Virus record (IMG/VR): IMGVR_UViG_3300050821_002957
Span: 1 to 64,000 of that record
Direction: 5' to 3' (one strand)
DNA: 64,000 nucleotides
Shown: positions 3,664 through 9,156 of the stretch, in pieces
Layout of the letters: the number at the start of each line of letters is the position of its first letter
Numbering within the stretch: position 1 is the first letter of the stretch
Notes under the pieces: generated by a model
Told to the model about the DNA's origin: nothing
The model's input: the letters and a program-made list of their open reading frames with translations, nothing else
The model's database searches: none
Program-made: the position numbers and the translations under genes

Positions 3664-3756
3664 GGTGGCGTGGTGTATGGTTGCACAGCCTGCCTTATAA
3701 GCAGGGTCGCACTAGATGAGTGCCCGGACTGAGTTCAATTCTCAGCGCCACTACCA
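3664..3756 (+). tRNA. tRNA with UAU (Ile) anticodon and long variable arm, 93 nt
   Basis: Acceptor GGTGGCG/CGCCACT-A-CCA; D stem GTGT/GCAC; CCTGC-CT TAT AA-GCAGG; V stem GCACT/AGTGC; T arm CTGAG-TTCAATT-CTCAG. Confidence 0.85.
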
Positions 3757-6026: not shown

Positions 6027-6662
6027 ATGGAACAAAAACCGTGCCAAGTGTATTACTGTTACAAAACAACCAACATCATAAATGGAAAGGTTTACATTGG
6101 GTTCGCCAGTGATCCCAAAACTCGCTGGCGAAATCATAGAAGAGACGCTGAAACAGGTCGAGGATTTGCCCTCGCCGCCGCAATCCGAAAGTATGGATGG
6201 GACGCATTTGAATTTGAAGTGCTCTGTTGTGGTAAAGACAAGCGTATGATGTTGGAACACGTCGAGCCTGCATTGATTGAACAATATCAAAGTCGCATTG
6301 AACAAAATGGCTACAATGTAACTCGGGGCGGCGAACACATCCCGGTAGGCAATCGAGGTGGCTCTAAAAAAGGTCGTATTGTTTCTGAAGAATCTCGATG
6401 TAAAATGAGTGCTGCTAAGAAAGGCAATGTTAATGGAGCAGGTAACAAAGGCCATAAACATTCCGATGAAACTAAACAAAAAATGGCAGCAGTCCATCTG
6501 GGTCATTTCGTTTCTGAAGAGACACGCAAGAAAATCGGTAATCGTTATCCTCGCACAGAAGAAGAAAAGCAACACCTAAGCAAAATAAATACGGGCCGAA
6601 AACATTCAGAAGAAACCAAACAGAAGATGGCAGCGACAAGACGAGCAATGAGGATTTTGTGA
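6027..6662 (+). CDS. GIY-YIG homing endonuclease with NUMOD3 repeats (Seg-like)
   Basis: YCYKTTNIINGKVYIG; repeated HS(D/E)ETKQKM. Confidence 0.9.
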   Translation: MEQKPCQVYYCYKTTNIINGKVYIGFASDPKTRWRNHRRDAETGRGFALAAAIRKYGWDAFEFEVLCCGKDKRMMLEHVEPALIEQYQSRIEQNGYNVTRGGEHIPVGNRGGSKKGRIVSEESRCKMSAAKKGNVNGAGNKGHKHSDETKQKMAAVHLGHFVSEETRKKIGNRYPRTEEEKQHLSKINTGRKHSEETKQKMAATRRAMRIL

Positions 6663-6663
6663 C

Positions 6664-6876
6664 GTGTGGAAGTACATCAAGGCACTCTTTACCCATCGGC
6701 CAAAATTCTATCGAGGCACCACAGATAAATTTTGCCACAGCCTTACCGCAAAGGGCAGGCGCATTCGTATTTTCGGATTCGCCTGGGGACCTTTTATGAT
6801 TGCATTCCATACACTCGACTTGACAAATAGCAGACCTTCTGTAAAATACAAAGGGTACTCCAATGAAGCTGACTGA
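6664..6876 (+). CDS. Hypothetical protein
   Basis: 70 aa, GTG start 1 nt after upstream stop. Confidence 0.5.
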   Translation: MWKYIKALFTHRPKFYRGTTDKFCHSLTAKGRRIRIFGFAWGPFMIAFHTLDLTNSRPSVKYKGYSNEAD

Positions 6877-7047
6877 AATGGAAAAGAAAATTTTGTTCGA
6901 TGCAATAACACTGTACAAAAACAGAGCAGAGACGATGTTGATACTACCATCTCGGCACTTCGTAGCAAATTGAAACGTGCTCTGGCTGAAGGAACCAACA
7001 GCACCGGCCCAAGATGATCTATTTGGTTGGAATGCGAAAATAATACC

Positions 7048-7075
7048 TTGACATCCTGATCCAATGTGGTATTCT
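7048..7075 (+). promoter_or_regulatory. sigma70-like promoter upstream of tRNA array
   Basis: TTGACA-16 nt-TATTCT preceded by TGTGG, same layout as 2561..2588. Confidence 0.6.
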
Positions 7076-7083
7076 TAGAACAT

Positions 7084-7156
7084 CAGAGGCGAAGTGCTCT
7101 GTTGAAGGGATCTTGGTTCATCCATGACCCTGCGTAGATAGAGCACTTCGCTGCTG
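7084..7156 (+). ncRNA. Candidate structured RNA / 5' leader hairpin
   Basis: Perfect 12 bp GCGAAGTGCTCT (7089-7100)/AGAGCACTTCGC (7140-7151) with inner AGGG/CCCT and TGG/CCA stems; no ORF. Confidence 0.45.
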
Positions 7157-7164
7157 TATAAATA
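7157..7164 (+). promoter_or_regulatory. T4-type late promoter
   Basis: Exact TATAAATA 17 nt before the leader ATG. Confidence 0.7.
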
Positions 7165-7181
7165 GAAACGAGAACACAGTC

Positions 7182-7229
7182 ATGAGACGAATTACCATTA
7201 CACGCCGAGAGGTTAAACGAAAGCGGTAG
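7182..7229 (+). CDS. Putative leader peptide MRRITITRREVKRKR (15 aa)
   Basis: ATG...TAG immediately downstream of late promoter; stop overlaps 5' arm of a hairpin. Confidence 0.5.
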   Translation: MRRITITRREVKRKR

Positions 7230-7273
7230 CGACAAGCTAACGCTCTAGTGCATTGGTGTTTCGTCGCTGCCGC
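7223..7273 (+). terminator. Hairpin (possible attenuator or processing stem) before first array tRNA
   Basis: GCGGTAGCGAC (7223-7233) pairs with GTCGCTGCCGC (7263-7273), followed by CTTT. Confidence 0.5.
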
Positions 7274-7291
7274 CTTTACAGTTTCCAACAT

Positions 7292-7368
7292 GGATCTGTA
7301 ACTCAAACGGACAGAGTAACCGTCTTTTAAACGGAAGGCTGTGGGATCGTACCCCACCAGATCCACCA
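7292..7368 (+). tRNA. trnK: tRNA-Lys(UUU)
   Basis: GGATCTG/CAGATCC-A-CCA; CT TTT AA loop; atypical T loop ATCGTAC. Confidence 0.92.
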
Positions 7369-7390
7369 AATTTTTCAGTTTTACCCATGT

Positions 7391-7467
7391 GGTCTCGTAG
7401 CTCAATGGATTAGAGTACTTCGCTACGAACGAAGGGGTTGCAGGTTCGAGTCCTGCCGAGACTACCA
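7391..7467 (+). tRNA. trnR: tRNA-Arg(ACG)
   Basis: GGTCTCG/CGAGACT-A-CCA; CTTCG-CT ACG AA-CGAAG. Confidence 0.95.
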
Positions 7468-7477
7468 CAATTTTTGC

Positions 7478-7551
7478 TGGCGATTAGTTCAAAGGTAGAA
7501 CCCCTGGCTGATTACCGGGAGACAAGAGTTCGATTCTCTTATCGCCTACCA
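7478..7551 (+). tRNA. Atypical tRNA with GAU (Ile) anticodon
   Basis: TGGCGAT/ATCGCCT-A-CCA (1:72 T:T); CCTGG-CT GAT TA-CCGGG (T37); AAGAG-TTCGATT-CTCTT. Confidence 0.8.
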
Positions 7552-7999
7552 TTTCGTCATGAATTTCACCATGACAGTTGGAACAGACAAGTATGCATTT
7601 GTTTAATTCGATTTTGATGTCTGACCATGATTTACCGCTGTTGTTTGAGATAGTGAAATCTTTTTGTGACGGATCTGTATGATGAAAATCCAGAGACCGA
7701 AGACATCGATTGTAACCACAGCGAGCACAGGAGCCGCCCAAATATTCTACGGCTTTTGCTTTGATATTTTGCCGACGTTTTTTGACTGATTGATAAGACG
7801 TTATAGTTCGAGGCCGACGAGGAACATGTTTAGCGCAATATGATCGTTTGCTACTGACCGGACTATTGCAAATTTGACATCGCCATTTTGTCCGATATTC
7901 TGTGAAACAATTTCGAGAACAGAATGGATTTGTTGGTTCGATAGATTTAGTTTTTTTGCGGTTGAAGTCTATACCGCAGTGCGTACACCTAAAGGTCAT
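7484..7999 (-). CDS. HNH endonuclease inserted antisense in tRNA array
   Basis: CARCGYNRC..SLDFHH.DP..K...CILVCSNCHGEIH; N-terminal Zn fingers; last codons antisense to tRNA 7478..7551. Confidence 0.88.
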   Translation of the reverse strand: MTFRCTHCGIDFNRKKTKSIEPTNPFCSRNCFTEYRTKWRCQICNSPVSSKRSYCAKHVPRRPRTITSYQSVKKRRQNIKAKAVEYLGGSCARCGYNRCLRSLDFHHTDPSQKDFTISNNSGKSWSDIKIELNKCILVCSNCHGEIHDEMVGDKRIELLSPGNQPGVLPLN

Positions 8000-8036: not shown

Positions 8037-8111
8037 GTCCCTGTAGCTCAACGGATAGAGCACTTGCCTTCTAAGCTCGGGATCTAGGTTCGATTCCTAG
8101 CAGGGATACCA
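8037..8111 (+). tRNA. trnR: tRNA-Arg(UCU)
   Basis: GTCCCTG/CAGGGAT-A-CCA; CTTGC-CT TCT AA-GCTCG (two stem mismatches). Confidence 0.9.
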
Positions 8112-8114
8112 TTT

Positions 8115-8188
8115 AGCCGCATAGCTCAACCCGGTAGAGCGTCTGCCTTACATGCAGAGGGTTCTCAGTTCAACTCTGAGTGTGGCTA
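8115..8188 (+). tRNA. trnV: tRNA-Val(UAC), CCA not encoded (TCA)
   Basis: AGCCGCA/TGTGGCT-A; TCTGC-CT TAC AT-GCAGA; CTCAG-TTCAACT-CTGAG. Confidence 0.9.
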
Positions 8189-8221
8189 TCAAATTTTAAG
8201 TAATAGGAAGAAGTAAAGAAA

Positions 8222-8404
8222 GTGATTTGTAGAGTATGTGGCGAAGAATTTTCGCCCGGAAGTAAACACCCAGGATACATTAATGTATGCCTGCAAGAAG
8301 AATGCAGAGAGACTGCTCGTGAACCTCTGGTGAGGCCGTTGGTATTGACAACTACGGTGAGCGTCCTGTATGATTCTGAAATAGAGACAAGTTTGGACTG
8401 GTAA
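8222..8404 (+). CDS. Small Zn-finger-like hypothetical protein
   Basis: CRVC...C..EEC; GTG start; ends inside tRNA-Lys(CUU). Confidence 0.45.
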   Translation: MICRVCGEEFSPGSKHPGYINVCLQEECRETAREPLVRPLVLTTTVSVLYDSEIETSLDW

Positions 8405-8469
8405 CTCAATGGTAGAGTAACTGGCTCTTAACCAGTAAGTTGTGGGTTCGAGTCCCACCCGGTCCACCA
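8395..8469 (+). tRNA. trnK: tRNA-Lys(CUU)
   Basis: GGACTGG/CCGGTCC-A-CCA; ACTGG-CT CTT AA-CCAGT. Confidence 0.95.
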
Positions 8470-8492: not shown

Positions 8493-9156
8493 ATGCCCAT
8501 CGTAGAAATAAGAGCCGCCGAAGGTGGTCTCGACGCAAAGCTGTTAGTAGATGATCAATTCACGATCTATCTAAAGCTGGCAGAGCGGAGGGGTCTTTGA
8601 GGTTGAGATAACTGAAAAGACTGAAGGATTCGTCGCATTTGTTGTGAGTGGTGACAAAGCCGAAGCAACGTTTGCAAATGAAGCAGGCGGTCATCGCTGG
8701 CAAAGAGTCCCGCCAACCGAACGCAAAGGAAGAATTCAGACAAGCACAATCACGGTTGCTGTCTTGCCTGAACCCCAAGCCGAAGAATTCAAGATTGACG
8801 AAAAGGATCTTGAATGGAGCACAACCATCAGTCAAGGTAAAGGTGGACAGTCGGTCAACACAACTTACTCTTGTGTCATCCTAAAACACAAGCCATCTGG
8901 TGAAACCGTTCGTTGTCAAAATGAGCGATCACAGTTGCGAAACAAGCAGACCGCATTGCGAGTGCTGCGATCACGTCTTCTGGCGCAAAAAGAAAACGCA
9001 GAGCACGCCAGCGAGTCAAAACAACGCAAAGATCAAATTGGTTCGGGTCAGCGTGGAGACAAACGCCGCACGATTCGAGTGAAAGATGGTCAAGTCAATG
9101 ATCATGTGACTGGGCAAAAATGGTCCCTGAAGAAGTACTTGAATGGGGACTGGTAA
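8493..9156 (+). CDS. Class I peptide chain release factor homolog (RF1-type PxT, GGQ) expressed by +1 frameshift at CTT-TGA 8595-8600; about 220 aa
   Basis: Frame 0 MPIVEIRAAEGGLDAK...ERRGL-stop; +1 frame EVEITEK...HRWQRVPPTERKGRIQTS...GKGGQSVN...RTIRVKDGQVNDH. Confidence 0.88.
8587..8601 (+). other. prfB-type programmed +1 frameshift cassette
   Basis: GGAGG-GGT-CTT-TGA-G: internal SD 3 nt before CTT TGA. Confidence 0.88.

Follow-up and report, generated by a model that had tools for sequence, protein, structure and literature searches.

Ribosome-mediated transcription attenuators of amino-acid operons, such as trpL, hisL, thrL, leuL, pheL and ilvL, use a short leader ORF that is enriched in codons for the regulated pathway, and the RNA of this ORF takes part in mutually exclusive folds, between which the position of the ribosome selects. 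Some leader-peptide attenuators act through Rho or lack an intrinsic terminator (tnaC; mgtL and mgtP of Salmonella, PMC3641672), where a leader ORF is combined with alternative stem-loops and no U-tract terminator, and in tnaC the event at the stop codon is the signal. T-box riboswitches give direct feedback from the state of a specific tRNA to the expression of genes for the function of that tRNA, while the prfB autoregulatory +1 frameshift uses a stop codon as a sensor of release-factor activity. On the other hand, phages such as T4 and T5 carry clusters of tRNA genes with interspersed small RNAs and homing endonucleases. Why phages carry tRNAs, and how they dose them, is an old open question, and the current ideas are codon compensation and escape from tRNA-targeting defences (PMC10264068). 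Leader-peptide attenuation has so far been tied to amino-acid and synthetase genes, and our full-text literature searches found no description of leader peptides or attenuators in front of tRNA genes or phage tRNA arrays.

In this work, we have analysed a stretch of 64,000 nucleotides (hereafter the window), which is the first 64 kb of a 405,631-nt contig of an uncultivated giant soil phage. The original prediction held that a short Arg/Lys-rich leader ORF overlaps a hairpin ahead of the tRNA array and release factor of this phage, and that a ribosome stalled near the end of the leader, through loss of tRNA-Arg or tRNA-Lys or through RF1 shortage at UAG, would block the hairpin and switch on the tRNAs and the release factor. 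Direct reading of the sequence confirms that the observation is correct. The interpretation is only partly supported, since the sensor half of the idea is well supported by comparative evidence, while the proposed effector, an intrinsic terminator, is not.

All parts of the leader and of the tRNA and release-factor island given by coordinate below lie on the plus strand. The leader ORF runs from ATG 7182 to TAG 7227–7229 and has 15 sense codons, encoding MRRITITRREVKRKR. Its UAG lies in the 5' arm of a stem that joins 7223–7233 to 7263–7273 with 11 pairs (10 Watson-Crick plus one U-G), is followed by CTTTAC and ends 18 nt before tRNA-Lys(UUU), which starts at 7292. ARAGORN and Rfam find nine and eight tRNAs in the window, respectively, and the set of Arg ×4, Lys ×2, Ile ×2 and Val comprises Ile(UAU), Arg(CCG), Lys(UUU), Arg(ACG), Ile(GAU), Arg(UCU), Val(UAC), Lys(CUU) and Arg(CCU). 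The first sub-cluster after the leader (7292–7551) consists of Lys(UUU) at 7292–7368, Arg(ACG) at 7391–7467 and Ile(GAU) at 7478–7551. The later tRNAs of the island, Arg(UCU), Val(UAC) and Lys(CUU), lie at 8037–8469, and are followed at 8493–9156 by an RF1-type release factor that lacks domain 1 and is split by a prfB-like +1 frameshift site (CTT 8595–8597, TGA 8598–8600). The later tRNAs, each group of them, and the release factor have promoter-like sites of their own (7874–7901 and 8345–8374), and only the first three tRNAs are certainly on the leader's transcript in the window.

Upstream of the leader, a sigma-70-like promoter at 7048–7075 consists of TTGACA, a 16-nt spacer and TATTCT, with an extended-minus-10 TG. 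The same TTGACATC...TGTG(G/C)TAT(T/G)CT arrangement is present in L216 and L223 (here and below, L followed by a number denotes a locus from a related uncultivated phage). A long hairpin of about 19 pairs at 7084–7156, not mentioned in the original prediction, lies between this promoter and TATAAATA at 7157–7164. We have considered this hairpin as part of the device, either as an RNase III site or as a tRNA remnant, but it is reduced to a 5-bp hairpin in L216 and L223 and is absent in L215, L219, L235 and L236, and it was therefore set aside as a lineage-specific insertion. The region 7080–7295 folds far better than shuffled sequences (z = −5.05, 0 of 200 shuffles as good), although part of this comes from the upstream hairpin. 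The GTATAAATAG motif at 7156–7165 is identical in all 8 relatives, 15–23 nt before the leader ATG, and may be either the minus-10 element or a T4-type late-promoter-like element of the leader transcript. It contains the only TATAAATA in the window. However, the window's own late genes carry CTAAATA, and in L215 and L219 the motif lies 17 nt after a TTGACA and is also a well-spaced minus-10 element of a TTGACA promoter.

We then asked whether the ORF could be a chance occurrence. Among all 464 ATG ORFs of 10–20 codons on both strands of the window, it ranks first for the fraction of codons read by the next three tRNAs (8 of 14, 0.57 against a mean of 0.13; next best 0.42), first for the fraction read by the whole island set (11 of 14, 0.79 against 0.23) and first for Arg+Lys content. 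The phage's own genes use Arg at about 3.7% of codons and prefer CGT, while the leader has six Arg codons and no CGT. CGA, used three times here, is read only by the inosine tRNA-Arg(ACG), through an I-A wobble that is slow. Nine of 14 sense codons are cognate to the downstream array, or 10 of 14 if the upstream Arg(CCG) is counted. In addition, GAGAA(CA) lies 8–12 nt before the ATG, as in bona fide genes of this phage, though the Shine-Dalgarno match is weak.

No cultivated relative was found in the phage collection. A blastn search of the region against 50,697 phage records matched tRNAs only, a tblastn search with a 934-residue structural protein found nothing, and the release factor matched no record above 60% identity, the top-ranked matches being uncultured or metagenome-derived records. 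The release factor, however, belongs to a family of more than 2,600 short phage factors. Contigs carrying the closest of these, or carrying a conserved 120-residue neighbour, are syntenic, with NADAR, HD, YqeY, the tRNA array and then the release factor, and seven of them carry a distinct version of the leader directly before their first tRNA-Lys(UUU). The peptides are MTRVTITRREIKRKR, MTRITITRREIKRKR, MTRRITRTEIKRKR, MTRRITRTERKRKR, MTFIIRKLKRRKR, MTRRRISIREKRKR and MTRTRIRVRSISKRKR. All start with ATG 15–23 nt after an invariant GTATAAATA, and all end with UAG inside the 5' arm of the stem. The eight versions come from contigs whose release factor is 64–92% identical, and all of them end in KRKR or RRKR, which corresponds in the window to the block AAA CGA AAG CGG at 7215–7226, directly before the stop. 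Their lengths of 13, 14, 15 and 16 codons mean that at least three length changes all kept the frame, and within the closest trio 4 of 7 substitutions are synonymous Arg changes. Across the eight leaders, 69 of 108 sense codons are cognate to the array directly downstream, although those tRNA sets read only 6–13 of the 61 sense codons. The non-cognate codons are mainly Thr, Glu and Ser, which have no cognate tRNA in the loci seen. It should be kept in mind that the eight relatives are not independent, and that the letters of the ORF are also constrained by RNA pairing, which can mimic coding constraint.

A conserved ORF with a covarying hairpin in relatives had been named beforehand as the test of the idea, and the outcome is positive. 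In an alignment of seven leaders, the 5' arm S1 (7223–7233), which contains the last two bases of Arg15, the UAG stop and CGAC, and its distal complement S3 (7263–7273) are 96.1% paired, with compensatory changes at two pairs (A-U/G-C and G-C/C-G/A-U). Only 4 to 10 of 500 shuffles do as well, though the shuffle controls overstate significance. Directly after S1 lies a second, proximal complement, S2 (7236–7243), which forms an 8-bp hairpin with S1. S1:S2 is 96.4% paired in seven sequences with one compensatory pair, while the window itself has one G-A mismatch. Moreover, the middle of the ORF (7186–7197, codons 2–6) is complementary to the 3' half of the hairpin loop plus the first three bases of S3 (7254–7265), which was missed in the original prediction. 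This ORF:loop complementarity is present in all seven sequences, and in L235 the helix is rebuilt from different letters. The untranslated leader therefore has two conserved and mutually exclusive predicted folds, namely fold X, in which ORF:loop encloses S1:S2, and fold Y, which is S1:S3. According to energy predictions and pair counts, X is the minimum-energy fold in four relatives (L216, L215, L219 and L237) and Y in three, including the window, as expected of a switch. Forcing the ORF to be single-stranded, as during translation, gives Y in every case, and this is the topology of a translation-operated switch. Minimum-energy folds of whole precursors were unreliable and were not used.

The exact mechanism of the original prediction, in which S1:S3 is a Rho-independent terminator and a stalled ribosome allows read-through into the tRNAs and the release factor, could draw on the stable stem overlapping the stop codon, on its conservation and covariation, and on the regulatory codons lying within ribosome reach of the 5' arm. 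However, the sequence after S3 is CUUUAC in the window, CUACCG in L216, CAAAAC in L215 and CAAACU in L219, and the other relatives differ again, so that the flank has three U in the window, none in L215 and no U tract conserved in any relative. S1:S2 is followed by a U-rich run only in L216 and L223. The terminator scan does not call the site, and the loop is 29 nt in the window and 29–36 nt overall. As the phage does have at least one canonical terminator elsewhere (20892–20861), the absence here is meaningful. In addition, a metatranscriptome contig identical to the window spans 7133–7388, running through the stem into tRNA-Lys, which places leader, stem and tRNA-Lys on contiguous RNA-library sequence. 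This evidence is weak, since it comes from an assembled contig without ends, direction or depth profile, its depth is about 5, and it may derive from contaminating DNA. Overall, we consider the terminator model very unlikely.

The spacer at 7274–7291 contains CAGTTTCC (7279–7286), an imperfect copy of the 3' acceptor strand of the tRNA, and we have tested whether pairing of the spacer with tRNA positions 1–8 could be the effector. The complementarity, to tRNA positions 1–7, is only suggestive for the window type, ranking an ordinary 31 of 145 tRNAs, while it is strong for the Thr leader described below (ranks 4 and 5 of 145). Another explanation is that the region is an untranslated structured 5' leader of the tRNA precursor, serving in processing, folding or stabilisation like the leader of rRNA operons, with the ORF being incidental to A/G/C-rich pairing segments. 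Much of the ORF does take part in conserved pairings, the Shine-Dalgarno match is weak, and many tRNAs of these phages have upstream segments complementary to their 5' acceptor strand. In silico, the leader lowers the predicted acceptor-stem probability to 0.06 or less in 5 of 7 relatives, whereas 31% of other tRNAs fall below 0.2, and this test is only suggestive. Such an element does not explain why ATG and an in-frame UAG are kept through at least three length changes, why Lys codons are the invariant ones in a G+C-rich clade, or why three sequence-unrelated leaders are each rich in the codons of their own downstream tRNAs. We therefore regard it as unlikely.

Two further leaders, which follow the same rule and replicate it independently, come from a distant clade, G+C-rich and with a release factor only 48–50% identical (L002, L013, L014 and L209). 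There, a different leader, MFCMKxKxKL, ending in UAG, lies before four tRNA-Lys genes. Its three Lys codons are invariant or change synonymously, while the codons between them vary freely (R/L/P and S/H/T). The stop abuts a 22-pair helix that is 100% paired with three compensatory pairs and that abuts the tRNA with no room for a U tract, and an alternative 12-pair fold exists. A blind scan of 111 mini-ORFs upstream of tRNA clusters in all loci examined recovered both Lys-type leaders, and also found, on the other strand of the same phages, a 30–31-codon Thr/Val-rich leader (for example MKRSTTNIATTATSMVVVAVVRPIMGDTTPC) before a Thr ×4, Asp ×2, Val ×3 array. This leader uses ACA, ACG, ACC, GTC, GTG, GTA and GAT, which is one codon for every anticodon of that array. 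It keeps its frame through a 3-nt length change, and its UGA lies in the 5' arm of an 11-pair long-range helix. Nevertheless, its Thr and Val runs are complementary to each other, so a hairpin alone could create that composition. The top hit of the scan, an Arg-rich mini-ORF before tRNA-Arg in L005, lies out of frame inside the acidic C-terminus of a real gene and was rejected as an artefact. Most other tRNA clusters in related phages have plain promoters and no such leader. Among the pattern scans, GGGGATGG-N6-CCGTCC was too loose and gave 120 chance loci, a tighter pattern scanned against metagenomes added one new Lys-leader variant, and two leader patterns on viral contigs returned only the source contig or chance hits.

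It is also conceivable that the ORF is a real small gene whose 13–16-residue polycationic product acts in trans, for example by binding RNA or ribosomes, while the stem is a 3' stabiliser of the small mRNA released when RNase P cuts the first tRNA. The basic C-terminus is conserved, leader peptides with functions in trans are documented (peTrpL, PMC7298713), and E. coli has a protamine-like small ORF (tpr) in the tyrT tRNA operon. On the other hand, the peptides of the three leader families share nothing but their match to the downstream tRNAs, and the basic residues in the G+C-rich clade are Lys (AAA/AAG) rather than the expected Arg. A mere stabiliser does not need the ORF:loop alternative pairing or the stop codon inside the stem. 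Although the two roles do not exclude each other, this explanation is very unlikely by itself.

Based on the above analyses, we propose that the segment 7156–7291 is a ribosome-operated leader of the tRNA array, an explanation that we regard as more likely than not. In this view, a short transcript start region is followed by a translated ORF, most of whose codons can only be read by the kinds of tRNA encoded just downstream (Lys, Arg, Ile). A ribosome moving through the ORF would break fold X and allow fold Y, while a ribosome held on the last four codons or on UAG would cover S1 and prevent both folds. A bacterial ribosome covers about 12–15 nt 3' of its P-site codon, and with K12, R13, K14 or R15 in the A site it would open about 4, 7, 10 or all 11 pairs of S1, whereas earlier codons are out of reach; these four codons are the conserved ones. 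The decoding speed of Lys, Arg and Ile codons, and possibly of UAG, would set how long S1 is unavailable while the polymerase makes S2, the loop, S3 and the tRNA, and would thereby be converted into an RNA conformation just in front of the first tRNA, giving more mature tRNA when decoding is slow and less when it is fast. As a ribosome that terminates normally and one that stalls both cover S1, the response must be kinetic. What our analysis has shown is the anatomy, its conservation, the covariation, the codon-to-tRNA match and the two folds in silico; that the ORF is translated, that stalling occurs, that tRNA output responds and in which direction are inferences, without direct evidence of translation or stalling. 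The effector is conjectural, as no U tract or other recognisable effector follows the stem. Factor-dependent or hairpin-dependent termination or pausing before the tRNA, possibly Rho-dependent as in mgtL or tnaC, is our first choice, followed by altered folding and 5' processing of the first tRNA (in the distant clade the helices include the first 4–8 tRNA bases), and then by altered decay.

The proposed role of UAG and the release factor is compatible with the data but not shown. The downstream factor is RF1-type, since its match to solved RF1 structures has E = 1e-38, against 1e-21 for RF2, and its PPT motif aligns with the PVT codon-recognition motif. UAG ends all 12 Lys-type leaders, though it closes only 8 of 65 long ORFs in the window, and an RF1-type gene follows those arrays in both clades. 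However, UAG is also constrained by pairing, the Thr/Val leader ends in UGA, so that a UAG/RF1 link is not general, and control of the window's release factor by this leader is not shown, given that the factor has its own promoter-like site.

A more far-reaching possibility, which we hold only tentatively at somewhat below even odds, is that giant phages run their tRNA arrays under direct supply-and-demand control. Each amino-acid-sorted array would be fronted by a leader peptide that samples the very codons its tRNAs read and, for the Lys/Arg array that ends in an RF1-type gene, the RF1-specific stop UAG as well. Loss of a host tRNA species, whether through codon-usage mismatch, phage-induced decay or host anticodon nucleases that cut tRNA-Lys or tRNA-Arg, would then be sensed on the ribosome and answered by making the replacement tRNA. 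This would be the first attenuator known to regulate tRNA genes, and a sensor arm of phage counter-defence. A cis-encoded gauge of this kind would show that tRNA supply itself is a regulated variable during infection, would extend leader-peptide attenuation to tRNA genes, and would turn the question of which tRNAs the host lacks or destroys into something that can be read from phage sequence. The leaders are short, modular and testable in reporter systems, and they could serve as natural sensors of individual tRNA pools.

Compared with the known systems, the locus is embedded in a T4-like phage (a Gp23-type capsid gene is present in relatives), with clustered tRNAs, GIY-YIG endonuclease genes among them and a TATAAATA late-type motif, whereas, as far as we know and could find, no cognate-codon leader ORF has been described in the T4 and T5 clusters. 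No Rfam leader or riboswitch family matches, since there was no match other than tRNA at E up to 10 on 6780–7320, at gathering level on the whole window, or at E up to 1 on both leaders of L013. T-boxes bind uncharged tRNA directly and need no translation, have conserved specifier and T-box sequences, and control aminoacyl-tRNA synthetase and amino-acid genes, and there is no T-box match here. The prfB frameshift, of which the release-factor gene of this island carries a similar site, is a recoding event inside the factor's own gene, while in the leader UAG would act through ribosome dwell time on an RNA switch, which is only conjecture. As with tnaC, mgtL and mgtP, a leader ORF is combined with alternative stem-loops and no U-tract terminator, but no rut site has been identified here (S3 plus spacer reads by eye as C-rich and G-poor, though it is only about 30 nt long), the downstream RNA is highly structured tRNA, and the proposed signal is cognate tRNA supply rather than a small molecule or ion. 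With the attenuators of amino-acid operons, the element shares a short ORF with start and stop codons in the leader, over-representation of codons for the presumably regulated function, and mutually exclusive predicted folds of which one involves the ORF, and the Thr/Val leader of the distant clade even resembles the thrL and ilvL peptides in composition. It differs from them in that the genes it would regulate are tRNA genes rather than biosynthetic enzymes, in that a G+C-rich stem plus U tract before these genes is absent, and in that the regulatory codons sit at the very end of the ORF with the stop codon inside the switch helix.

In the window, the long hairpin 7084-7156 (within the segment 7073-7160) appears to have been inserted inside an ancestral minus-10 region. 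In two relatives, L215 and L219, the arrangement TTGACA, 17 nt, TATAAAT is uninterrupted, while in the window and in the relatives L216 and L223 we can observe GGTAT/GCTAT...TGTAT flanking a hairpin of variable length. It may be a small mobile hairpin, or it may be an insulator between two promoters. Further upstream, at 6863-7020 (+), the small ORF behind the strong promoter-like site 6820-6847 seems to continue in the -1 frame after the run CAAAAAC (6913-6919), reading ...DDVDTTISALRSKLKRALAEG.... This could be a frameshift, a sequencing error at a homopolymer, or two overlapping small genes.

We have also observed a possible late-promoter motif. CTAAATA occurs 19 times in the window, mostly on the minus strand between 20843 and 60050, while about 11 occurrences are expected. 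At 17 of these sites, an ORF of at least 60 codons starts within 40 nt, often within 5-16 nt. This looks like the late-promoter motif of the phage, and implies very short 5' untranslated regions. One CTAAATA lies 5 nt before the ATG of a 171-codon ORF with no Pfam match (7484-7999, minus strand), which is placed on the opposite strand between the Ile(GAU) and Arg(UCU) tRNAs. In L216 and in a further related locus, L233, these tRNAs lie within about 100 nt of each other and are separated only by a second Ile(GAU), so the ORF is an insertion into the array.

Some tRNA genes and tRNA-like segments of these phages are unusual as well. At 3664-3756 (+) of the window, ARAGORN calls a 93-nt tRNA-Ile(UAU), but the Rfam tRNA model does not find it at gathering score; its unusual length is conserved in relatives (L216 1862-1953 and L223 3025-3118). 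In L215 (5150-5262) and L219 (1010-1108), a tRNA-like 3' end, consisting of a T arm GGGGGTTCGATTCCCCC plus an acceptor strand ending in GCCA and preceded by a long irregular body, lies just upstream of the leader promoter. ARAGORN does not call it, and it may be a tRNA with an insert or a decayed tRNA. L223 offers a natural variant of the leader region at 6340-6600. There the leader ORF, S1 (the 5' arm of the switch), S2 (its proximal complement) and the loop are intact, but S3 (the distal complement of S1) and the 5' part of tRNA-Lys(UUU) are replaced by what reads as a remnant of an HNH endonuclease gene fused to the 3' part of the tRNA, and ARAGORN calls no tRNA-Lys there. In addition, for many tRNAs in the phage loci L005, L011, L013, L014 and L016, the 25 nt upstream of the tRNA contain 7-8-nt perfect complements of its first 8 bases, for example before Arg(UCU) in L005 and before Thr(UGU) in L013. 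This may reflect a common way of holding pre-tRNAs unfolded, or traces of tRNA duplication.

The release factor of the phage, at 8493-9156 (+) of the window, lacks domain 1 and is split. ORF0 (35 codons, Pfam PCRF 103-134) ends at CTT TGA (8595-8600), and the rest, i.e., the PCRF end plus the RF-1 domain with GGQ, continues in the +1 frame. The motif CGGAGGGGnCTTTGA, a Shine-Dalgarno-like element plus CUU UGA as in prfB, is present in 20 of 26 related loci (L002, L005, L008, L009, L013-L018, L215-L223 and L233). Yet the protein is RF1-type according to its PPT motif, so an RF2-specific stop would gate an RF1-like factor.

In three loci of a distant clade (L013 2733-2940, L002 1352-1558 and L014 88-272, all on the minus strand), a Thr/Val-rich leader ORF of 30-31 codons, with nested and alternative helices, lies before a Thr-Asp-Val tRNA array. 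This leader resembles the leader peptides of the thr and ilv operons, but it precedes tRNA genes.
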